Below, one piece after another: positions 20,332 to 62,301 of a DNA stretch of 64,000 nucleotides. The stretch covers positions 62,001 through 126,000 of the IMG/VR virus record IMGVR_UViG_3300049048_000052; one strand, 5' to 3'. Position numbers and translations under genes: made by a program. Every line of letters begins with the position of its first letter. Within the stretch, counting starts at the first letter, position 1. The notes beneath the pieces were generated by a model, which was given only the letters and a program-made list of their open reading frames with translations, was not told the DNA's origin and did not search any database.

Positions 20332-20421
20332 TGGGATGTAGCTGGTAATTGGTAACCACACAAACTGTTAATTTGTACCCCTAAACATGGGGCCCTGGAG
20401 GTTCGAGTCCTCCCATCCCAG
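20332..20421 (+). tRNA. trnN: tRNA-Asn(GUU) with long variable arm
   Basis: acceptor TGGGATG/CATCCCA, G73, U1:A72; ACAAA-CTGTTAA-TTTGT; variable stem CCCC-TAAACAT-GGGG; T arm GGAGG-TTCGAGT-CCTCC; no CCA. Confidence 0.85.
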
Positions 20422-21840: not shown

Positions 21841-22893
21841 TTGTCTTACCTAAGTGTAAAGACAGTGCGTAAATTAGCAAGTATACAGAAGATTGTAAGT
21901 GTAGAAGCCATTGAGGGTAAAGATAGAATAGTACAGTGTGGGGTCCTTGGCTGGTCAATGGTTACTCAGAAGTCTAATAACTTCCAAGTGGGTGACTACT
22001 GTGTGTTCTTTGAGATAGATAGTATATTACCTGAGGCAGAGTGGTCAGCCTTCTTAGAAGGTAAGACTAGGATCAGGACTAGGAAGTTTGGTGGTGTATT
22101 AGCACAAGGTCTCATGTTACCCATCGATGCTATACCTGAGGTAGAGTCACATCTACGTCAAGTGGATGGGGATATCGAAGGTCTAGATCTAACAGAGCTA
22201 TTAGGTGTAATACAATGGGAGCCTCCTGTTGATGCTAATACTGGTGAGAGTAGAGGTAACTTCCCTACCCATATCATTAGTAAGACCGATGAGATCAGGA
22301 TACAGAGTTGTCCTAAGGTCTTAGAGGAATTGAAGGGACTACCTTGGTATGCTGCCCTTAAGATGGATGGCTCCAGTGCTACCTACTTCTGGGATGATGC
22401 CCCGCCTAAGATGGATATGTCCCCAGGCTTTGTCAGTTGCTCACGTAATATGAGAAAGAGTGAGGACTCTCATTTCCATCAGGTTGCGCTGAGGTATGGA
22501 CTAGATGAGATATTGAAGACCAATGATTACCTAGTATTCCAGGGTGAGGTAGTAGGTCCAGGTATTCAAGCTAATAGGTTAGGACTTAAAGAGTTAGACC
22601 TATTCATATTTAACGTATATGACAGAAGGGAGAAGAGATACTTAACCCTATCTGAGGCTCTGCAAGTATGTAAGTTTGGTAAGCTCAAGCATGTACCCAT
22701 TATCGATCAAGGGGAGTCCTTTGATCTAACTCAGGAGGCATTAGTCCAAATGAGTATAGGTGAATATGAGGGCACTAAGAATCCTAGAGAGGGTATCGTA
22801 GTGCGCCCTCAGACTCCCGTCTATAGTAATGTATTGAGGGACAGACTGTCCTTCAAAGTAGTTAATCCTAATTATCTGTTGAAGTATGAATAG
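21841..22893 (+). CDS. ATP-dependent RNA ligase (Rnl2/DRB0094-like) with N-terminal OB-like domain
   Basis: motif I KMDGSS, FQGEVVGPGIQ, motif IV EGIVVR, motif V FKVVNPNYLLK; start probably GTG at ~21866. Confidence 0.9.
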   Translation: MSYLSVKTVRKLASIQKIVSVEAIEGKDRIVQCGVLGWSMVTQKSNNFQVGDYCVFFEIDSILPEAEWSAFLEGKTRIRTRKFGGVLAQGLMLPIDAIPEVESHLRQVDGDIEGLDLTELLGVIQWEPPVDANTGESRGNFPTHIISKTDEIRIQSCPKVLEELKGLPWYAALKMDGSSATYFWDDAPPKMDMSPGFVSCSRNMRKSEDSHFHQVALRYGLDEILKTNDYLVFQGEVVGPGIQANRLGLKELDLFIFNVYDRREKRYLTLSEALQVCKFGKLKHVPIIDQGESFDLTQEALVQMSIGEYEGTKNPREGIVVRPQTPVYSNVLRDRLSFKVVNPNYLLKYE

Positions 22894-23168: not shown

Positions 23169-24032
23169 GTGGTACTAATGCAATTAATACTGGAGGATCT
23201 CGTCTTTGATGAGGGTAAAAGGGTAACTAGATTAGCCTCTATTGCTAAAAGTTTAGGGCATGAGGCTAAGATAATACATGCACTAAGAGAGTTACCTAGT
23301 GTGGACTTCAAGAGTCCTGCTATATTCTATGGCTCTATTAATGGGGCCCGTAGGATAACTAAGCCTAAGTTCTGGGGCAAGAGTGATGACATAGTTATGC
23401 CTGGGATAATTGGTGAGTGGAATAACTTTAGGTGTACCACTTACTATAATCATCTGGGTCCATATTTACTAAACAGAACCTATGTGATGGCGCCATTAAG
23501 AGAAATCTTTAGGATGGCCTCACTATATAGTGTGATGTTCCATAGCATAGGTGAGAGCTATAGTGACGATGGTCTATTCATAAGACCTGATGATCCCTAT
23601 AAAAGCTTCACTGGTCAACTGGTAGGTGTAAAGGAACCCTTAGATAGGTTCATGAGAGCTAACTGTCTATTCATAGATGAGCCTGATAAGATGGCCGTGG
23701 CCTCAGGTATGAAAAGGATATCTGCAGAGTACCGGCTATTCATTAAGGACTCAGAGATAATCACAGGCTGTCAGTATAGTAGAGAGGGTGACTCTCATTA
23801 TGTCGATGCATTACCCGAATGCCTACTTCTATATGTCCGTCTAGTATTAGACAGTACTAGTTGGAGACCTGCCCGTTTATGGGTTATGGATATAGGGGTG
23901 TATGATGGTCGTTATAGTGTTCTAGAGATAGGCCTAGCTAATTGCTGTGACCTATATGTTTGTAATGAGGAACTTTTTGTAAGAGCATTATTAGAGGTTG
24001 CACTAGATGACTGGAACGATTCTCAAAGCTAG
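23169..24032 (+). CDS. ATP-grasp domain protein (DUF4343/R2K-like)
   Basis: LFIRPDDPYKSFTG, EYRLFI..IITGCQY, VMDIG..VLEIG. Confidence 0.75.
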   Translation: MVLMQLILEDLVFDEGKRVTRLASIAKSLGHEAKIIHALRELPSVDFKSPAIFYGSINGARRITKPKFWGKSDDIVMPGIIGEWNNFRCTTYYNHLGPYLLNRTYVMAPLREIFRMASLYSVMFHSIGESYSDDGLFIRPDDPYKSFTGQLVGVKEPLDRFMRANCLFIDEPDKMAVASGMKRISAEYRLFIKDSEIITGCQYSREGDSHYVDALPECLLLYVRLVLDSTSWRPARLWVMDIGVYDGRYSVLEIGLANCCDLYVCNEELFVRALLEVALDDWNDSQS

Positions 24033-33552: not shown

Positions 33553-34299
33553 ATGAATAAGCCACTATGGTTACACGCTCTCATAGCCCAGATAACTGAT
33601 ACTAAGAAGAGAGCGGAGGGCATCAAGAAGTCCGTATATCAGAAGTTACAGAAGGCTACTCTCTTCGTAGCTACACTAAAGGAGTACACCCCATTAGTAG
33701 AGGGAGGTATACAGTACACATCTGAGGGTACATCAATCGTACCTGAATCAGTACCTCTACTATTGGATGAGTTCAATGAGGCTGTCTCCAAACTATTAAA
33801 TGAGATGGCTACCCAGGATTGGGGCAATACAAAGGCTAAGGCCGATGTTATTATTGATGATATAGTTATTGTTAAGGATGCACCTGTAACATTCCTAATG
33901 GCGTTACAGAGTCAGCTAATTGATTATAGAACTTTGTTTGATCATGTACCCACTCTAAGTCCCGTGGACAAGTGGGAATATAATGCAGGTCAAATGGTAT
34001 GGAGCACACCAGCTACCATTACTAATAAGGAACAAGTAATTAAGGAGTGGGTACCTATCTTCCAACCTACAGAGCACCACCCAGGTGAGGCCAAGGAAGT
34101 ATCTAGGACAAAGCTAGAGGGTACATGGGAGAGCCGTAAGTTTAGTACTGCACTACTCCCTTCCCACAGGAAAGAATTGCTACAGAGGGTTGATAGACTA
34201 ATTGAGGCGGTAAAGGTGGCACGTGAGGAGGCCAACCGTATTCAAGTAGAACCCAAGGATGTAGCTACAAGTATCATTGGGTACCTAATGGGTGCCTGA
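33553..34299 (+). CDS. conserved uncharacterised coiled-coil protein (DUF7873-like by recall), cognate of the downstream tRNA-mimic RNA
   Basis: ATQDWGNTKAKADV..D...APVTFLMALQSQL.D...P...W; F.PTEHHP; G.W....FS.AL....ELL.RV..L.EAVK.AREEAN. Confidence 0.7.
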   Translation: MNKPLWLHALIAQITDTKKRAEGIKKSVYQKLQKATLFVATLKEYTPLVEGGIQYTSEGTSIVPESVPLLLDEFNEAVSKLLNEMATQDWGNTKAKADVIIDDIVIVKDAPVTFLMALQSQLIDYRTLFDHVPTLSPVDKWEYNAGQMVWSTPATITNKEQVIKEWVPIFQPTEHHPGEAKEVSRTKLEGTWESRKFSTALLPSHRKELLQRVDRLIEAVKVAREEANRIQVEPKDVATSIIGYLMGA

Positions 34300-34712
34300 T
34301 GGTAAACGGCGTAGGCTAAGGTTAAAGGTGTATAGGTAATAGTGTAGGTTCGAATCCTGCCCTTCCCATATATGGGAAGGTAGTCCAACTGGTAGAGACT
34401 GTCCAATACACTATATAAGACTGAGCATTAAGTTCAGATTATCGCCCTAGACTAAGTCTAAGGACAACAGCTCAGGTCGACTGTCTAGGACAACATTGAC
34501 CCACGTTGGTTCGAATCCAACCCAGGCCGCTTGGGGGCGACCCTATATGGGTAGGTAGCTGTCACACTTCTACCCCTTTCTTGGCCTGGTAGACTAGAGG
34601 TTAGTCAGGTCTTTATTAGATTGATCCTAGACAACTGGAAATGAGAATACTGAGATCACTGTTGATGGGGGATTACTAATGCAAGGCATACTGCATGGTA
34701 ATCCCCTTCCTA
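34300..34712 (+). ncRNA. tandem circularly permuted tRNA-mimic RNA (two YrlA-like modules)
   Basis: module 1: T arm 34344-60, closed acceptor CCTTCCCA-TATA-TGGGAAGG, D arm 34383-99; module 2: T arm 34505-21, CCAGGCC/GGCCTGG, D arm GACT-AGAGGTT-AGTC, closing TGTCTAGGA/TCCTAGACA; 3' hairpin GGGGATTAC/GTAATCCCC. Confidence 0.8.
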
Positions 34713-36683: not shown

Positions 36684-37472
36684 ATGGATCTGGCAGTCAG
36701 GATCAAGGAATTCTATGAGTATGCATACCGCACCTTCCTACCCAGGAGGATGCCAGTCATACTTAGAGTAGATGGTAAGGCATTCCACTCTTATACAAGG
36801 GGTATGAATAGACCCTTTGATGAGAGATTGGAAGAAGTAATGAACCTTGTAGCTATTAAGCTATGTAAGGAAATACAAGGTGCTCAGATAGCCTATGTGC
36901 AATCTGATGAGATCAGTATATTAATTCATGGTTATAAGAAGCTCAATAGTGAGTCATGGTTTGGTAATAATGTACAGAAGATGACCAGTGTTAGTGCTGG
37001 TATAGCTAGTGCATGGTTTACCTACCACTCATCTAGGTTAACTACTGTATCTGAGGATATAGGTAATACCCAACAGTTTATAGAATCTAAGCTAAAGCCA
37101 GCAGTATTTGACTCTAGGGTATTCGTACTCCCTGAATCAGAGGTATGTAACTACTTCATATGGAGACAGCAGGATGCTACTCGCAATAGTATCTCTATGC
37201 TTGCCCAGTCTTTATACTCCCATAAGGAGTTAAATGGGGTTACATGTAATCAGATGCAGGAGCTCTGTTTCCAGAAGGGTCATAACTGGAATGATCTACC
37301 TATCATTAGAAAGAGGGGTAGATGTATTCGTAAGTTTATTAGGTATACACCTGTAGCTGGAAGACCTGAGGGTAATACAGTTGCTAGATCCTATTGGGAT
37401 GTAGACTATGAGACTCCTATCTTTACTGAGAATCGTAACTATATTGAAGATCTATTAAAGACATATGAGTAG
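36684..37472 (+). CDS. thg1: tRNA(His) guanylyltransferase Thg1/TLP
   Basis: RVDGKAFH, YVQSDEIS, FDSRV, NYF.WRQ.DA.RNSI. Confidence 0.93.
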   Translation: MDLAVRIKEFYEYAYRTFLPRRMPVILRVDGKAFHSYTRGMNRPFDERLEEVMNLVAIKLCKEIQGAQIAYVQSDEISILIHGYKKLNSESWFGNNVQKMTSVSAGIASAWFTYHSSRLTTVSEDIGNTQQFIESKLKPAVFDSRVFVLPESEVCNYFIWRQQDATRNSISMLAQSLYSHKELNGVTCNQMQELCFQKGHNWNDLPIIRKRGRCIRKFIRYTPVAGRPEGNTVARSYWDVDYETPIFTENRNYIEDLLKTYE

Positions 37473-39176: not shown

Positions 39177-39264
39177 TACTATAACAGTAGGGATAAACAA
39201 CCCTACTGTTATATCCACCAGAGTACCCTTGACATAGAGTTTAATATTTGATATCAATATGTAT

Positions 39265-39337
39265 AGGTAGCTGGTCCAATATAGGAACGGGCTGTCTCGA
39301 TAAGAGGCTATGCTAGGTTCGAATCCTAGGCTGCCTA
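39265..39337 (+). tRNA. degenerate tRNA-like gene (Ile GAU-like)
   Basis: AGGTAGC/GCTGCCT plus A; T arm CTAGG-TTCGAAT-CCTAG; bulged anticodon stem, C at position 33, aberrant D loop. Confidence 0.45.
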
Positions 39338-39356
39338 TTGGTAAATAGAATTAGTC

Positions 39357-39776
39357 ATGATAAATGTATTTAAGTATTCAGTTAAGGACAAGTCTTTAGT
39401 AAGAATAGGTAAGTTTGATAGTCTTAAGGTAAGGGATGTAAAGCAATCTCTTAGTCGTAGCAGCTATACAGAACTGAATCCACATATGGGAGATAGCCAT
39501 GATAACTATGGTGCGGAGATACAGGACCTAATCTACTTCAATTTGATATTGGGTGAATTATGGAACAACTATCTAGATAGAGAACATAGAGTTGTCATAC
39601 AGCTTATACCAGGAGAATATGATTACTGTACAAGGGACCATTTGGATAGAGTATATTATCTAGAGGTAGGTAAGGGTCCCTTCCAAAGAAGGATGACAGA
39701 TTGCATGAGCCTAAGGATAAGAGAGATTAAAGGACCTGCTAAAGGTCTACATACATCACTAGAGACAATCATATGA
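39357..39776 (+). CDS. hypothetical protein
   Basis: ORF track. Confidence 0.6.
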   Translation: MINVFKYSVKDKSLVRIGKFDSLKVRDVKQSLSRSSYTELNPHMGDSHDNYGAEIQDLIYFNLILGELWNNYLDREHRVVIQLIPGEYDYCTRDHLDRVYYLEVGKGPFQRRMTDCMSLRIREIKGPAKGLHTSLETII

Positions 39777-39926: not shown

Positions 39927-39986
39927 GCCGCTGGATATGGTCAGGGACCTGATCACCCCTTGAGGTTCGATTCCTCACAGTTGGCT
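39927..39986 (+). ncRNA. minimal tRNA-like RNA (acceptor, one hairpin, T arm)
   Basis: GCCGCTG/CAGTTGGC; TGAGG-TTCGATT-CCTCA; single GGTCAG/CTGATC hairpin. Confidence 0.45.
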
Positions 39987-40026: not shown

Positions 40027-40140
40027 GAGGGGGCCACCCGACCCTAGGTTCGAATCCTAGTTACGCCATCCGGCTGCGTAATGGCTGAGTGGCTAAAAGC
40101 AGGTAGTAGGAAAATCCTACTCATCGTCGGGAGCCTCCTC
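40027..40140 (+). ncRNA. YrlA-like circularly permuted tRNA mimic
   Basis: GAGGGGGC..CCCGAC/GTCGGG..GCCTCCTC closing stem; T arm CTAGG-TTCGAAT-CCTAG; closed acceptor TTACGC-N9-GCGTAA; D arm TG-GCT-GAGTGGCTAAA-AGC. Confidence 0.75.
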
Positions 40141-41151: not shown

Positions 41152-41718
41152 CTATTGACTTCATTGATTTACCCTATTGATTGTTTACCTCATAGGATAA
41201 ACACAGTGCGTAGATCAAAGAAACTAGCCAAGGCCCTCGCTAATCGTCAAGCAGCATTCGATATCTATGCTGCATCGGCAGGTCAACGAGGTCCGGCTTG
41301 GAATGCATACCCAGGTGGATTCACCCGTCCGGGTTCAAATAAGAAGGGCTTCCGTTAATGAGGGATGTTCTGTTAACTATACTTAACATGCTGGTGGGTA
41401 TAGGCCTATTTATCCTAGCTATCTGGGTATTAGGTCCTTTAACTCATTAGTTATTTGTAGCTCATTTATAACCCCAAGGAGGGTAGAGCTATGACCCAGA
41501 TCATCGATCCGTTTGCCAAGGCCTTCTTTATCATAATCGTAGGATTGATCGTATTAGTCATAAGGCTAATAGTGATGACATTCACGCACAGGCCTAGGTA
41601 GTCCTTAGAAAGGAGGAGGGTTAATCTCCTCCTTTTATTATGTTGCCCACTAGATTACAGATCCTAGATATGTTAATAACTACTAGGAAACATCCGGTTG
41701 TAATAAAGGTGAGGGGAT

Positions 41719-41943
41719 ATGGTATTGGCAATTAGAAGATTCCTGTTCCATAACAACGGGGTCGCTGCGGATAGCTACACAGAGGATCAATGTGTAGCTA
41801 TGAGAAAAGAGCTAAATGATATAGGGGCCGGGTTGCCTATTAGTACATCAGATAAGGTGGTAGCAACTACCTACCGCAACCTGATGCAAGAGGAAGAGGA
41901 TGAAGGGTACTGTTATCCTTCATCTAGAGATTACGAAGGTTAG
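41719..41943 (+). CDS. hypothetical protein
   Basis: GAGGGG RBS. Confidence 0.55.
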   Translation: MVLAIRRFLFHNNGVAADSYTEDQCVAMRKELNDIGAGLPISTSDKVVATTYRNLMQEEEDEGYCYPSSRDYEG

Positions 41944-41981
41944 ATAAATAAGTATTGGGGATATCCCCAATACTCTTACTT

Positions 41982-42146
41982 GCCTGGTATGCACTAAGGT
42001 AGTGCGATTAGACCACATATGTTTGGGCTCATAGTTCAATGGATAGAATGATTCCCTCCTAAGGATTAGATCTAGGTTCGATTCCTAGTGGGCCTGCTTT
42101 TTATATGGTGGTTTAGTTATAGTGGGTTCGATTCCCACACCAGGCG
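41982..42146 (+). ncRNA. outer tRNA shell enclosing tRNA-Arg(CCU)
   Basis: acceptor GCCTGGT/ACCAGGC plus G; D arm GCAC-TAAGGTA-GTGC; extended stem ATTAGACCAC-ATAT/ATAT-G-GTGGTTTAGT; T arm GTGGG-TTCGATT-CCCAC. Confidence 0.8.
42025..42096 (+). tRNA. trnR: tRNA-Arg(CCU)
   Basis: GGGCTCA/TGGGCCT plus G; D loop AATGGATA (A20); loop CT-CCT-AA; T arm CTAGG-TTCGATT-CCTAG. Confidence 0.88.
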
Positions 42147-42167
42147 TTAGTTAATTAGGGATAATGT

Positions 42168-42575
42168 ATGATTGGTGGGTTAATAGGGACCCTAGTAGTC
42201 TATGCATTACTAGGTATTAGTATCATGGCCTTTGTGTCTGACGAAGTGGGAATTGAGGAGGGTATCTTTGTAGCAAAGGTGTACTTCTCCCCATTCTTCC
42301 TTATCTTCTTACTTATAACAGAGCTAAGCCTATTAGCCTTTAGATTTACGAGGATGTCCCGCAGAATCAAGGCTAAGGCAAAATGTGATGCTACAAATAG
42401 GTTGGCTGGATTAGAAGGGCTGGATATTTCTCATCTTCTAATAGAGATACCTGAGAACTGTAATCTGGAGTTTGTAGAGAATCCAGTACAGAGATTCCTG
42501 TGGTTCGAGACCTATAAGAGAGAATACAATAATACTCTCAGGGTTATGTCCGATGAGTCATGGTTAAATAGATAG
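42168..42575 (+). CDS. membrane protein (paralog of next gene)
   Basis: two TM segments; LEFVENPVQRFLWFETYKREYN. Confidence 0.65.
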   Translation: MIGGLIGTLVVYALLGISIMAFVSDEVGIEEGIFVAKVYFSPFFLIFLLITELSLLAFRFTRMSRRIKAKAKCDATNRLAGLEGLDISHLLIEIPENCNLEFVENPVQRFLWFETYKREYNNTLRVMSDESWLNR

Positions 42576-43959: not shown

Positions 43960-44670
43960 ATGGCAGTATATGACGGTTGCACCATATTAAATCCTAAAGG
44001 GGAGTTTCTAACATGGTGCGCCTCCAAAAAAGCAAGATGGTATCTCAATAAGGGTAGGGCTAAACTAGTAGACCAGGATAAGGATGGAAGGCTAACTATA
44101 CAGTTAGAGTTTGAACCTAAGGGACCTGGTGTAATAGATAACCCCTACTACAGAGAACCAAAAGAGAATAAGTGTGTAGTCTGTGGGACCACTGATGATT
44201 TAACAAGACATCATGTGGTCCCTCGTTGTTATAGGAAACATTTCCCTAATGATGTTAAGTCTTTTGCTTCTCATGATGTGTTGGCGGTATGTCATGAATG
44301 TCATGAGAAGTATGAGGCTAGTGCAGACCTATTCAAGGTAGAGCTATTAGCTGAGGTAGATATTAAAGAGGAGGATATCCTAAGGATTAATAGTCTGATA
44401 AAGGCGGCATCCTCCTATCTATCTACCAACATTAGGAGCCGTAAGGGTAGTGCTAACTTCAATAGATTAAAGGAGTACTTTGGCACCTCAAATTTCAATA
44501 GGTCAGATCTAGAGGAACTAGCTAACCTTAAGATAGATAAGCATAGTTATGTTGTATCTAACATAGAGAGTGTTGAACACTTCTGTCAGAGGTGGAGGGA
44601 ACACTTTGTTAAGTATGCTAAACCCCAGTACCTACCTAAGTACTGGACTGTTGAGGGTACATGGTGCTAA
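43960..44670 (+). CDS. HNH-like nuclease resembling the EXD2 C-terminal domain
   Basis: YDGC.IL.P.GE.L..C..KKA.WYL.KG; YY..PKEN.CVVCG; RHHVVP..YRKHFP..K...SHDVL..CH.CH. Confidence 0.75.
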   Translation: MAVYDGCTILNPKGEFLTWCASKKARWYLNKGRAKLVDQDKDGRLTIQLEFEPKGPGVIDNPYYREPKENKCVVCGTTDDLTRHHVVPRCYRKHFPNDVKSFASHDVLAVCHECHEKYEASADLFKVELLAEVDIKEEDILRINSLIKAASSYLSTNIRSRKGSANFNRLKEYFGTSNFNRSDLEELANLKIDKHSYVVSNIESVEHFCQRWREHFVKYAKPQYLPKYWTVEGTWC

Positions 44671-50117: not shown

Positions 50118-50396
50118 ATGAAACCAGGACCTAAGAAGGGTAGTAGTCAGAGTAAATCCCATGTTGCCAAGAGGGCCAAGGCTGTAAAAGGTAAGGCCAA
50201 TGGTATGTTTAAGGATGGAAGACGTTCCTATCGTTCCATAGCGGGAGCTAGGAATAGCGATGGAAAAGTTGTGCATCACAAGGACGGTGATAGGACCAAT
50301 AATTCAAGATCTAATCTAAAGGTCCTGAATGATGGTCCTAGTAGGCCAGGTAGGAAGACAACTAGTAAGCATGAAAGACTTACTAGACGTAAGTAG
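50118..50396 (+). CDS. small HNH endonuclease-like protein
   Basis: VVHHKDGDRTNNSRSNLKVL. Confidence 0.75.
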   Translation: MKPGPKKGSSQSKSHVAKRAKAVKGKANGMFKDGRRSYRSIAGARNSDGKVVHHKDGDRTNNSRSNLKVLNDGPSRPGRKTTSKHERLTRRK

Positions 50397-50567
50397 CCAG
50401 TGTAGCTTAAAAGGTAAAGCGTACCCCTCTCAGGGTATACCGAAAGGGTCCATAGGTAATAGGTGTAGTTGCAAGATTCTGTGAGAGTTATAAACTCCGT
50501 ATTCGGCAGAGTCCCAGACTGCACAACTATACCTATGGATATGAGGGTTCGATCCCCTTCACTGGCG
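50396..50567 (+). ncRNA. 172-nt tRNA-like RNA with a giant variable-region domain
   Basis: GCCAGTG/CACTGGC plus G; D arm GCTT-AAAAGGTA-AAGC; TACCC-CTCTCA-GGGTA; inserted helices TCCATAGGTA/TACCTATGGA, GTGTAGT/ACTGCAC, GATTCTG/CAGAGTC; T arm GAGGG-TTCGATC-CCCTT. Confidence 0.78.
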
Positions 50568-58429: not shown

Positions 58430-58489
58430 ATCTTAGGGCGTAAGCCCTTATTCATTCCTCAGTGGCGCAGTGGATAGCGCACCCGCCTT

Positions 58490-59179
58490 TAGGATAGGAG
58501 CACTTCTAGGGGAAACCCTTAAAGTGAATGTGGTTAAATTCAGGGAAGACTAAGTAGATTATGATCAAACTCCCAATGACAGTTAGGACATAGAGGTACT
58601 AAGTTGTCTACAGAGTTAATGTCGTTAACTAAGGTTTCATGTGGAAAACTAGAGATGGCCTTTCTATGGGCTATTTCAACATGTTTGTTATACCCACAGT
58701 TAATACAACAAGACCAGTCGAGTTTTGCTGCTACAGCTCTAGCCCTTGCTCTAACTAAAGCATAGGCTGAGGACCTGTGATGTTTATTGTACATGGCTTC
58801 TTCTAAAGTGACATTTAGATTTAGTCCCTTACGATGAGATCCAAAGCAGGATTTACAGTAGGTTCTGGAGTTACTTATAGGAGTGGTGCATACCAAGCAT
58901 TTATTCTCGGGTTTCCTCTTGGGGAAATTACGATTATTATGTGTAGCAGCACAACTCTTACTACAGAACTTAGGGTTAGTTGTTTCCTTATTACAGTTGA
59001 GACAATTCATAGTTTATATGTTAATCCTGAGCCAAGCTATTCGAAAGCCCTATTATATCATGGGTTCGAATAGAAGGTGCAGAGACTTAACAGCCACCAC
59101 CTAAGGTCATAAGACTATGGTGAAGATAAAGTCCAGACTACAAACACTCTTGAGTGGCAGCTAAAGCTGTAGTAGGAGG
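58490..59179 (+). mobile_element. group I intron (tRNA-Leu(UAA)-intron-like) inserted after U34
   Basis: P AAATTCAGGGAA 58536, Q AATCCTGAGC 59023, R GTGCAGAGACT 59077, S AAGATAAAGTCC 59123; P1 CTT/GAG, P10 TAG/CTA; terminal G59179. Confidence 0.88.
58540..59010 (-). CDS. intron-encoded HNH homing endonuclease (antisense)
   Basis: Cys-rich Zn fingers; CINCG..VEIAH..N...NLVPLCPNCH.EFD. Confidence 0.85.
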   Translation of the reverse strand: MNCLNCNKETTNPKFCSKSCAATHNNRNFPKRKPENKCLVCTTPISNSRTYCKSCFGSHRKGLNLNVTLEEAMYNKHHRSSAYALVRARARAVAAKLDWSCCINCGYNKHVEIAHRKAISSFPHETLVNDINSVDNLVPLCPNCHWEFDHNLLSLP

Positions 59180-59237
59180 CTAAGCGGTCGGTCGCAGGTT
59201 CGAATCCTGCCTGGGGAGTTTTAGTTAGGAGAAGATC

Positions 59238-61774: not shown

Positions 61775-62301
61775 AGGTAGCCATTGGTACTCAAAGTGGT
61801 CCTAAGATAGAGTCTGTACTCAATGGATTTGAAGTACTAGGCCTAATCGCTATAGATATATATCCTAAGAATTGTATAACGGGAATAGTACAGCCCAAGT
61901 CCTTAAGTCAAATGGAGAACTGTGCTATGACAAGAATGGAGCAGTTGCAGGATGAATTTGGGGACTGTATCTATCATGTGGTAGTTGAGAGTGGCCTTAT
62001 TCAAAAGAGGGCACCCATAGGTAATACTGAAACTACGCTTTGTCTCATTAAGCATGTGCCAACAGGTACTCTAGGTTATGGGACTGGGGGTGAATGGAGG
62101 GTACCTGAGTACATTATCGATCAGCTAAATGAATGTGGTGAGATGGGTAAGACTCAGGTTAAGGGTGCTCAACCCTTAGATAAGCTAGCTATTGGTGGTA
62201 GTGTTATTGATGCTATCACAGGTGGGAGATGGAATAGGGTTGACCAAATAGAGGTTGCCACTATACATGCCCTTGCTTATTTGTTACATGAAGTAGAATA
62301 G
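61771..62301 (+). CDS. yjjX: inosine/xanthosine triphosphatase (YjjX/DUF84-like)
   Basis: MKVAIGTQS.PKI.SV; QP.S; VV.ESGL; GG.I..IT.GR..R. Confidence 0.7.
   Translation: MKVAIGTQSGPKIESVLNGFEVLGLIAIDIYPKNCITGIVQPKSLSQMENCAMTRMEQLQDEFGDCIYHVVVESGLIQKRAPIGNTETTLCLIKHVPTGTLGYGTGGEWRVPEYIIDQLNECGEMGKTQVKGAQPLDKLAIGGSVIDAITGGRWNRVDQIEVATIHALAYLLHEVE

Follow-up and report, generated by a model that had tools for sequence, protein, structure and literature searches.

The locus at positions 41982-42146 of the window analyzed here (64,000 nucleotides, positions 62,001 to 126,000 of the IMG/VR record IMGVR_UViG_3300049048_000052, a jumbo phage) encodes a complete tRNA-Arg(CCU) at the tip of a long stem that replaces the anticodon loop of a second, anticodon-less tRNA-shaped RNA. 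All elements lie on the plus strand. In the outer RNA, which we denote the shell, the 5′ strand of the acceptor stem, GCCTGGT (41982-41988), forms seven of seven Watson-Crick pairs with ACCAGGC (42139-42145), which is followed by the discriminator G42146. Positions 8 and 9 (A and U, 41989-41990) are followed by a D arm (41991-42005) consisting of a 4-bp GCAC/GTGC stem and a TAAGGTA loop that carries G18 and G19, and by a G-A junction (42006-42007) that comprises position 26 and one extra nucleotide. Next comes a helix (42008-42020 paired with 42103-42116; arms TTAGACCACATAT / ATATGGTGGTTTAG) of 13 bp, 3 of which are G-U, with G42107 bulged out of its 3′ strand; the first 5 nucleotides of the 5′ strand stand where the anticodon stem would be, the next 8 replace the anticodon loop, and the minimum free energy (MFE) fold adds up to 3 flanking pairs. 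The shell is completed by a 5-nt variable loop, TTATA (42117-42121), and a canonical T arm, GTGGG-TTCGATT-CCCAC (42122-42138). The helix is capped, via the linkers GTTT (42021-42024) and CTTTTT (42097-42102), by the inner tRNA (42025-42096), which is 72 nt long including the discriminator G42096, has its anticodon at 42058-42060 and lacks an encoded CCA. This inner tRNA is a canonical decoding tRNA by sequence: ARAGORN calls it tRNA-Arg(cct), although the end reported at 42097 includes one base beyond the discriminator, the Rfam tRNA model (RF00005) scores 60.4 bits (E 1.7e-12) against a gathering score of 29, the 7-nt anticodon loop is CUCCUAA, with U33 and a purine at position 37, and A20 is present in the D loop.

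A prior sequence-only reading of this stretch had described such a nested arrangement, and that observation is confirmed, with small corrections. The outer variable loop is 5 nt long rather than 4, there is the extra nucleotide at the 26/27 junction, and the A8 that was noted in place of U8 is accompanied by U14 (41995), so that the usual U8:A14 tertiary pair is inferred to be swapped rather than lost. The nested fold is both the MFE and the centroid structure, with an MFE of -61.3 kcal/mol against -43.5 +/- 3.8 for 200 shuffled sequences (z = -4.65), none of which folds as well. A perfect 7-bp acceptor match in the roughly 100-nt search range is expected about 0.006 times per site. Furthermore, an independent Logan assembly (SRR35214979) is identical over 6.4 kb around the locus, so the arrangement is not a misassembly.

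Standard tRNA finders report only the inner tRNA at this locus, which alone is called by ARAGORN and Rfam, and the outer RNA is therefore invisible to annotation; ARAGORN did not call it even in intron mode. When the cargo was deleted in silico, the shell was called as tRNA-like in 117 of 690 deletion variants, but the anticodons assigned were arbitrary, and precise removal of 42021-42102, one of the checks proposed beforehand, gave no call. No excision boundary yields a canonical 7-nt loop with U33 and a purine at position 37, and accordingly we rejected the possibility that a hidden decoding tRNA can be recovered from the shell; a tRNA-Met(CAT) with a long variable arm that ARAGORN proposed for cargo-deleted variants was discarded because it has A33 and a weak stem with two G-U pairs. 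Comparison of the shell with 1,898 tRNAs gave best matches to tRNAs for Trp, Asn, Thr, Met and Val, with only 1 of the top 50 being Arg, and the shell has T rather than A at position 20, so that no isotype ancestry could be assigned to it.

In 48 long ORFs, AGG accounts for 41.6% and AGA for 35% of the arginine codons, so that the nested tRNA decodes the most-used arginine codon of the phage and the arrangement sits on an essential supply line. All tRNAs of the window lack an encoded CCA. In all six ARAGORN-called tRNAs other than the inner one, in the shell and in a tRNA-like gene at 50396, the discriminator is followed by TT, and the trailer of the shell, TTAGTTAA, matches the TT...TAA trailers of the Asn, Tyr1 and 50396 tRNAs. 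U is present at position -1 of both the outer and the inner 5′ ends. The two halves of the shell that would remain after removal of the inner tRNA cofold at -42.8 kcal/mol, against -10.6 and -9.1 kcal/mol for each half alone.

We failed to detect orthologues of the shell or relatives of the phage in any collection searched. A blastn search of 41700-42500 against 50,697 phage records matched only the inner tRNA, at 81-85% identity; an exact 24-nt pattern spanning the outer T arm and acceptor recovered only the source contig from IMG/VR; searches of IMG/VR with neighboring proteins (a 236-aa HNH-like ORF, and the 135/150-aa paralogues used as an alignment) returned only the queries themselves; and the 135-aa neighbor, searched against 5.8 billion proteins, found only itself, its second contig being the identical Logan assembly. 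Hence the search for compensatory changes in relatives, which the sequence-only reading had named as a refuting test, has no orthologues on which to operate, and selection on this shell can be argued only by analogy.

Such analogues exist. Scans for two T-loops located 25-55 nt apart revealed dozens of nested tRNAs, mostly in CPR/Patescibacteria and Bacteroidota MAGs. Perfect 7-bp outer acceptors were found at 8/129, 14/149 and 19/164 T-loop-pair sites, against about 1 expected in each set, and 52 candidates have a called inner tRNA, many of them bracketed by 12-24 bp helices of unrelated sequence. Clean cases are rare in phage contigs: among about 240 viral T-loop-pair loci, only the present locus and two others (L030 and L081 in the numbering of our scans) qualify. 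The shared layout includes a 7-bp outer acceptor, an outer T arm, a D-loop GG, a bracket helix of 12 bp or more at the anticodon position and a complete inner tRNA on the same strand; many of the shells lack an anticodon (L210, L244, L305, L293, L200 and L164), and the inner tRNA is Arg in about half of all cases. A covariance model (R1) built from ten CPR examples, without the phage locus, matches 41982-42146 end to end (model positions 1-164 of 164) at 106.3 bits (E 2.7e-21), including the D arm, whereas ordinary tRNAs of the window score 10-35 bits, and only partially. Because R1 also gives full-length hits of 50-65 bits on ordinary tandem tRNA pairs, only scores of about 80 bits or more were taken to indicate nesting; a tRNA-Pro with a 16-bp stalk (L102) is not inside a shell, the stretch 39227-39388 of the window is not a nested unit, and a flank-duplex control, being contaminated by other nested tRNAs, is used only descriptively.

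In one CPR family the outer stems are kept by compensatory changes: RNAalifold recovers the nested fold in 8 CPR sequences, 27 of 53 pairs show compensatory changes and none of the 7 outer acceptor pairs is broken in any sequence. The anticodon-less shells L210, L244 and L305 also differ by compensatory changes. The recurrence of this architecture in many CPR lineages, with compensatory evolution of the outer stems, suggests a conserved function rather than a curiosity. The phage locus nevertheless departs from these cellular examples in several respects. In the CPR examples, the outer and inner tRNAs are usually the same isoacceptor and the arms are GC-rich, often with a CCCGCC / GGCGGG motif, whereas here the outer RNA shows no detectable Arg ancestry and the arms are AT-rich, a search for the motif having hit only CPR loci. 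Thus, the resemblance is one of architecture, homology is not shown, and convergence is possible. The inner tRNA matches a Flavobacteriia nested tRNA-Arg(CCU) at only 58 of 72 positions, which is too weak to infer a host.

Contrary to the statement in the sequence-only reading that no natural tRNA-in-tRNA has been described, the layout has been mentioned once, in passing, in the description of "enigmatic" tRNA introns of Lak megaphages, one of which, in tRNA-Thr(UGU), is predicted by Rfam to be a tRNA (Devoto et al., 2019; PMC6784885, Table S6). Our literature searches found no paper on the nested tRNAs of CPR and Bacteroidota. As at the present locus, the Lak inserts interrupt tRNA genes of huge phages in the anticodon region and contain an acceptor-stem plus T-arm module, and their 3′ boundary lies next to the 3′ end of the intronic tRNA. 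However, the Lak outer tRNAs are otherwise normal, with an anticodon and the insert at about 36/37, the introns carry a 5′ small hairpin and an A-rich spacer rather than two complementary arms, and intron-less alleles exist. Here, there are no loop remnants, the outer RNA has no anticodon, only the 4-nt GTTT linker precedes the inner tRNA, and the cargo is bracketed by the 13-bp helix.

We propose that this is a nested tRNA gene in which a single transcript folds into a tRNA-shaped shell displaying a complete, functional tRNA-Arg(CCU), and we consider this reading somewhat more likely than not (probability about 0.55). Under this model, the acceptor/T-arm module of the shell would be recognized by RNase P and by the 3′ processing enzyme of the CCA-less type (RNase Z), which would trim the unit out of the transcript as a closed, exonuclease-resistant precursor; the same two enzymes would then cut at the inner tRNA, after U42024 and after G42096, releasing the AGG decoder, to which CCA is then added. 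What remains would be a two-piece tRNA-like RNA of 43 nt plus about 50 nt, held together by the 7-bp acceptor stem and the 13-bp helix. The shell has no anticodon loop and cannot decode, and its role is most likely in cis, as a folding and processing scaffold for the inner tRNA, although a role in trans as a tRNA mimic remains possible. The analysis establishes the structure, the membership in the class delineated here and the need of the phage for the inner tRNA, whereas every processing step, including cleavage by either enzyme, and the purpose of the shell are inferred from sequence alone. A leader and trailer locked in a helix only 4-6 nt from the inner acceptor stem might hinder rather than help RNase P and RNase Z, and the benefit of a scaffold over a plain tRNA gene is unexplained under this model.

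Of the alternatives, the least unlikely is that the locus is a relic of a DNA-level event, in which a tRNA cassette flanked by inverted repeats, an intron-like or mobile element, inserted into the anticodon loop of a pre-existing tRNA gene, leaving a shell that has no function of its own and is intact only because the event is recent. Lak megaphage genomes are polymorphic for the presence or absence of the tRNA-containing intron; in one CPR family (family A), joining the exons at CTTC|TAA gives a perfect tRNA-Arg(UCU); the same 10-bp imperfect inverted-repeat arms (CCCGCCTGCC / GGCGGGCAGG) occur in the opposite orientation relative to the tRNAs in loci L246 and L247, as would be expected of a DNA element; in Bacteroidota examples the outer RNA keeps only the 3′ half of an Arg(CCU) anticodon arm; and an HNH endonuclease-like ORF (43960-44670; motifs recognized by eye, without a Pfam hit) lies 1.8 kb downstream of the phage locus. 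At the locus itself, however, no anticodon-loop remnant flanks the arms, the helix continues seamlessly from the 5-bp stem, the arms show no similarity to any other example, every shell helix and the conserved D-loop and T-loop nucleotides are intact, and the shell keeps the tRNA trailer signature of the phage. Moreover, anticodon-less shells persist across distant CPR lineages with compensatory changes, which argues for maintenance. It is doubtful, too, that the insert is a true intron that is spliced out to yield a second decoding tRNA, as is likely for Lak-type introns and CPR family A, in which intact anticodon-loop halves join into canonical loops. The window does hold a tRNA-Arg(UCU) split by a group I intron, so interrupted tRNA genes are tolerated in this phage, but the failure to recover a canonical anticodon loop from any excision boundary, the lack of a match of the insert to group I introns or other ribozyme families and the absence of a bulge-helix-bulge motif make this very unlikely. 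Chance resemblance, or an assembly chimera of two tRNA genes, has nothing in its favor beyond the locus being a singleton and can be all but dismissed given the folding z-score, the identical independent assembly, the end-to-end match to R1 and the fact that the arms are not part of any tRNA yet pair over 13 bp.

It is also possible, but unlikely on present evidence, that the shell itself is the product, acting in trans, in two pieces or sealed by a ligase, as a tRNA mimic: a decoy for host tRNA-targeting nucleases or modification enzymes, or a Y-RNA-like partner of a phage protein. This broadens the interpretation in the sequence-only reading, namely, that the shell protects the precursor or times release of the inner tRNA and that the phage RNA ligase could seal it into a decoy, an interpretation that is only partly supported: its structural component is right, and the chemistry of the proposed processing is sound, given that RNase P leaves a 3′-OH on the upstream piece and RNase Z a 5′-P on the downstream piece, the ends that ATP-dependent ligases need, but protection, timing and sealing remain conjectural. 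The same window encodes several other tRNA mimics that cannot decode, namely, a YrlA-like permuted tRNA-like RNA at 34312-34432 (26.8 bits, E 0.0012 in a local Rfam search), a second closed T-arm RNA at 40027-40140 (z = -4.66) and a 72-nt tRNA-like RNA with a 5-nt "anticodon" loop at 39265-39337, along with tRNA-repair-type enzymes, a Thg1-like protein (36684-37472; Pfam 1.6e-28) and the ligase (21841-22893), which is Naegleria NgrRnl-like (Rnl5). There is no direct evidence for such a function, and the ligase fits poorly because its family is known for sealing nicks inside duplexes, not 10-nt open loops, whereas the excised shell would carry 4-nt and 6-nt single-stranded tails at the helix tip. 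A sealed shell would have a 13-bp stem and a 10-nt loop, unlike any known target of anticodon nucleases, and because CPR bacteria, which are not phages, keep the same architecture, an anti-defense role cannot be general.

More speculatively, and with low likelihood, nested tRNAs may be a widespread, essentially unrecognized gene architecture of phages and CPR bacteria in which a tRNA serves as a "self-excising" insert removed by the ordinary end-processing enzymes RNase P and RNase Z, the leftover two-piece shell being a functional RNA in its own right. In this phage, the shell would then belong to a battery of non-decoding tRNA mimics (two permuted YrlA-like RNAs and the 5-nt-loop tRNA-like RNA) and tRNA-repair enzymes (the Thg1-like protein and the Rnl5 ligase) deployed around host tRNA-targeting defenses. 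In bacteria and phages, tRNA genes are assumed to be simple and contiguous. A tRNA-shaped RNA that has given up its anticodon to carry another tRNA raises the questions of whether RNase P and RNase Z can act as an intron-removal system, whether two-piece tRNA-like RNAs accumulate and what they bind.

The shell is a natural counterpart of the engineered tRNA scaffolds for recombinant RNA (Ponchon and Dardel, 2007), in which, reportedly, the anticodon stem is extended, the loop is replaced by a cargo RNA and the chimera is processed and stabilized as a tRNA; that scaffold is artificial, and its cargo is not itself a substrate of RNase P and RNase Z, so it stays in one piece. Archaeal tRNA introns and bulge-helix-bulge splicing have been reviewed (PMC4090602). 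Some of these introns host functional small RNAs at the anticodon region, such as the box C/D guide in the Haloferax pre-tRNA-Trp intron, but archaeal splicing needs a bulge-helix-bulge motif and a splicing endonuclease, whereas here the helix is continuous with a single 1-nt bulge, the setting is bacterial-type (class II tRNA-Tyr, CCA-less genes) and the outer RNA cannot be restored to a tRNA. YrlA/Y RNA and the tRNA-like domain of tmRNA with helix P2 each combine an acceptor/T-arm/D-loop module with a long helix emerging where the anticodon stem would be. However, YrlA is circularly permuted, with a closed acceptor hairpin and 5′ and 3′ ends that form the long stem, whereas here the acceptor stem is open and there is no RF02553 hit at the locus; tmRNA has a G3:U70 pair, an mRNA-like domain with a tag reading frame, and pseudoknots, whereas ARAGORN finds no tmRNA here, pair 3:70 is C-G and the unit is only 165 nt long. 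Finally, group I introns interrupt the anticodon loops of bacterial and phage tRNAs; the group I model (RF00028) has no hit at the nested locus even at E up to 10, the insert being a tRNA rather than a ribozyme, but the same model identifies an intron at 58479-59155 within the tRNA-Arg(UCU) gene at 58456-59218 of the window.

The locus under study lies in IMG/VR contig IMGVR_UViG_3300049048_000052, a 251,780-bp jumbo-phage contig in which contig position 62001 corresponds to position 1 of the window. The intergenic space between a 74-aa ORF (41719-41943) and a 135-aa ORF (42168-42575) holds a hairpin (41950-41975) followed by a 165-nt unit at 41982-42146, for which the minimum-free-energy fold and the centroid fold are both a tRNA inside a tRNA. 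The outer RNA consists of an acceptor stem, GCCTGGT/ACCAGGC, with 7/7 Watson-Crick pairs, a D arm (GCAC-TAAGGTA-GTGC), a 13-bp helix with three G-U pairs and one bulged G (42008-42020 pairing with 42103-42116), a 5-nt variable loop, a T arm (GTGGG-TTCGATT-CCCAC) and the discriminator G42146, whereas the complete inner tRNA-Arg(CCU), at 42025-42096, is connected to the helix by the linkers GTTT and CTTTTT. Only the inner tRNA is detected by ARAGORN and Rfam, with an Rfam score of 60.4 bits. The fold is 4.65 standard deviations better than those of dinucleotide shuffles, with 0 of 200 shuffles folding as well, and an independent assembly of a public read set is identical over 6.4 kb. Thus, the nested arrangement described in the sequence-only reading is correct, with trivial amendments: the outer variable loop is 5 nt rather than 4 nt long, there is one extra base at the 26/27 junction, and A8, which had been noted as a replacement of U8, is matched by U14, so that the 8:14 tertiary pair is swapped rather than lost.

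The outer RNA cannot decode because eight further base pairs and the inner tRNA stand where the anticodon loop should be. When the cargo was deleted in silico at 690 combinations of boundaries, ARAGORN called a tRNA in 117 of these, but with arbitrary anticodons (Tyr, Ile, His, Lys, Met, Thr and others), and precise removal of 42021-42102 gave no call at all. Moreover, no group I core, no other Rfam family and no bulge-helix-bulge motif were found at the locus. Thus, there is no support for a splicing route that would regenerate a decoding tRNA here.

We failed to detect orthologs of this unit. A nucleotide search of phage records, an exact-pattern scan of IMG/VR, scans with three neighboring proteins, and a search of 5.8 billion proteins with the adjacent gene returned only the source contig or unrelated tRNA-Arg genes. 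In contrast, analogs are numerous. We scanned for two T-loops 25-55 nt apart, a spacing that is impossible for tandem tRNAs, and then asked whether the seven bases after the second T arm pair with a heptamer upstream of the first tRNA. Perfect 7-bp outer acceptors appeared at 8 of 129 sites in viral contigs, 14 of 149 sites in metagenome contigs and 19 of 164 sites in genome contigs, against about one expected by chance in each set. Fifty-two candidates contain an ARAGORN-called inner tRNA, which is Arg in about half of all cases, and many have bracket helices of 12-24 bp whose sequences are unrelated to one another. Of 30 genome examples, about 23 come from CPR/Patescibacteria MAGs (Saccharimonadota, Kaiser-, Kuenen-, Roizman-, Woese-, Doudna-, Falkow-, Giovannoni-, Nealson- and Niyogibacteria, and Parcubacteria), and four come from Bacteroidota.

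Two sub-types are clear among these loci (L numbers denote individual loci from the scans). In the first, a CPR family of eight loci (L227:11284-11465, L354:6705-6883, L163:7262-7440, L201:88-264 on the minus strand, L263:3777-3956 on the minus strand, L320:427-605 on the minus strand, L300:6974-7154 and L147:2417-2607), the outer exons join between CTTC and TAA to give a perfect tRNA-Arg(UCU), and the insert consists of CCCGCCTGCC, a linker, a tRNA-Arg(UCU), a linker and GGCGGGCAGG, with a 10-bp helix that always keeps one C-A and one U-G position. In the second, as in this phage, the outer RNA has no anticodon and a continuous helix carries the inner tRNA (L210, L244, L305, L293, L200/L209, L164/L255 and L277). 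The Bacteroidota (Cytophagia, Flavobacteriia) nested tRNA-Arg(CCU) genes L270:2998-3167, L337:538-697, L252 and L279, together with L189 from an unassigned metagenome contig, have an outer RNA that keeps its acceptor stem, D-loop, T arm and only the 3' half of an Arg(CCU) anticodon arm (CTAAAC...), with the arms TCCCGA.../...TCGGGA. Furthermore, L361:4394-4628 and L247:5053-5231 are nested tRNA-Ala genes in which both the outer and the inner RNA carry G3:U70, so that the anticodon-interrupted outer RNA could, in principle, still be charged by AlaRS.

To quantify membership in this class, we built a covariance model, R1, from ten CPR nested tRNAs, excluding the phage locus. The model matches 41982-42146 across all 164 model positions at 106.3 bits (E 2.7e-21), whereas the ordinary tRNAs of the window score 10-35 bits, mostly over the inner portion. 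The loci L030 and L081, the two other nested tRNAs that we had found by eye among about 240 viral loci, score 93 and 80 bits, respectively, again over all 164 positions; tandem tRNA pairs, however, also give nominally full-length matches at 50-65 bits. The architecture is therefore rare in phage contigs and common in CPR genomes.

With respect to selection on the outer stems, the evidence comes from the analogs. For the eight-member CPR family, RNAalifold independently recovers the nested fold and reports compensatory double changes in 27 of 53 pairs; all seven outer acceptor pairs are intact in all eight sequences, and six of the seven show double changes. Within a genome, the outer and inner RNAs are near-copies except in the acceptor and T stems, which is what correct nested folding would require. 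The anticodon-less shells L210, L244 and L305 also differ by compensatory changes in both the acceptor stem and the arms. A caveat points the other way: in L246 and L247 the same imperfect 10-bp arms occur inverted relative to the tRNAs and sit at a different loop position (33/34), which is easier to explain by a DNA element than by an RNA motif. Conceivably, the inserts of this family represent a new kind of bacterial tRNA intron or a small mobile element.

Full-text literature searches for nested, embedded or interrupted tRNAs found no dedicated description. However, 'enigmatic' introns have been reported in the tRNAs of Lak megaphages, one of which, in tRNA-Thr(UGU), is predicted to encode a tRNA and is polymorphic for presence or absence (Devoto et al., 2019; PMC6784885). 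Table S6 of that study shows that all these introns carry an acceptor/T-arm module preceded by a small hairpin, inside otherwise normal anticodon loops. This intron type is not confined to Lak phages because L020:6371-6533, a tRNA-Leu(UAA) in a 345-kb viral contig of our set, has the same design, with a small hairpin (AGCAGAGTAAACTGTCT), an A-rich spacer and an acceptor/T-arm minihelix. The phage locus studied here differs in having no anticodon, no 5' hairpin, and two complementary arms. This is a real, non-artifactual nested tRNA, a form, with an anticodon-less shell and a bracket helix, of a phenomenon noted only once in passing, and it is an instance of a much larger architecture in CPR bacteria that appears to be undescribed.

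As for the mechanism, AGG is the commonest Arg codon of the phage (41.6% of Arg codons, with AGA at 35%), and the inner tRNA must therefore be produced. No tRNA in the window encodes CCA; the discriminator is followed by TT in all six ARAGORN-called tRNAs other than the inner one, in the outer shell and in the tRNA-like gene at 50396; the shell shares the TT...TAA trailer of bona fide tRNAs; and U precedes both the outer and the inner 5' ends. RNase P leaves a 3'-OH on the leader, and RNase Z leaves a 5'-phosphate on the trailer. We infer that both enzymes act at the outer ends and at the inner tRNA, which would release tRNA-Arg(CCU) for CCA addition and leave two shell halves; these would stay annealed, given that they are predicted to cofold at -42.8 kcal/mol, against about -10 for each alone. 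The structure, the class membership, the canonical character of the inner tRNA and the codon usage that calls for it are established by the present analysis, whereas cleavage by either enzyme, the fate of the shell halves and the function of the shell are inferences.

We consider a role of the shell in cis, as a folding and processing scaffold, the most likely reading (probability of roughly 0.55). That the shell is a relic of an insertion is possible but unlikely, and it is somewhat more doubtful still that it acts in trans as a tRNA mimic, a reading that includes the decoy proposed in the sequence-only reading; a true spliced intron is improbable, and an artifact is all but excluded. The earlier proposal that the phage RNA ligase could seal the processed shell into a decoy fits poorly. 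The ligase (21841-22893) is NgrRnl-like (PDB 5cot, E 7e-43 over its full length), and that family seals duplex nicks, which does not match a helix tip carrying 4-nt and 6-nt tails.

The window is unusually rich in tRNA-related oddities (those below are all on the plus strand), which keeps the tRNA-mimic reading alive but does not prove it. At 34312-34432, directly downstream of a DUF7873 protein (33553-34299, Pfam 1.2e-59), there is a circularly permuted tRNA-like RNA that runs from a T arm through a closed acceptor hairpin (CCTTCCC-ATATAT-GGGAAGG) to a D arm, all inside a stem formed by its own ends; it matches Rfam YrlA (Y RNA-like) at 26.8 bits, below the gathering score of 69, with E 0.0012 in the local search. 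A second closed, permuted RNA, at 40027-40140, has a T arm near its 5' side and a long stem formed by its termini (GAGGGGGC...GCCTCCTC), with a fold z-score of -4.66, whereas further orphan T-loop motifs at 39964 and 34508 have no recognizable acceptor partner. A 72-nt tRNA-like RNA at 39265-39337 has a 7-bp acceptor stem and a canonical T arm, but a 5-nt loop (GATAA) on the 'anticodon' stem; neither ARAGORN nor Rfam calls it a tRNA, and it may be an 'empty' non-decoding tRNA mimic. The 172-nt tRNA-like gene at 50396-50567 (Rfam tRNA, 38.7 bits) has a perfect acceptor stem, a 6-nt 'anticodon' loop (CTCTCA) and a roughly 95-nt hairpin inserted in the variable region, and shares discriminator G and the TT...TAA trailer with the outer shell.

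Among the decoding tRNAs, the tRNA-Asn(GUU) at 20332-20421 is 90 nt long with a long variable arm of class II type, which is unusual for Asn. The tRNA-Arg(UCU) at 58456-59218 is interrupted in the anticodon loop by a group I intron (Rfam RF00028, 54.1 bits, 58479-59155), and its exons appear to join between CTT and CTAA, so both AGR-decoding tRNAs of this phage are encoded in interrupted or nested form. In addition to the NgrRnl-like Rnl5 RNA ligase, the same region encodes a Thg1-like protein of the tRNA 3'-5' nucleotidyl addition/repair family (36684-37472, Pfam 1.6e-28) and an R2K ATP-grasp protein (23169-24032), and together the three enzymes look like a tRNA/RNA repair toolkit. A 236-aa ORF at 43960-44670, located 1.8 kb downstream of the nested tRNA, contains HNH-like motifs (HHVVPR..., CHECHEK) but has no Pfam hit, and may be a homing endonuclease. 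Finally, the scans revealed a recurrent tRNA-shaped RNA of about 130 nt, with a perfect acceptor stem and an internal extra T-arm hairpin in a long variable region, at loci L172, L215 and L397, in both viral and metagenome contigs.
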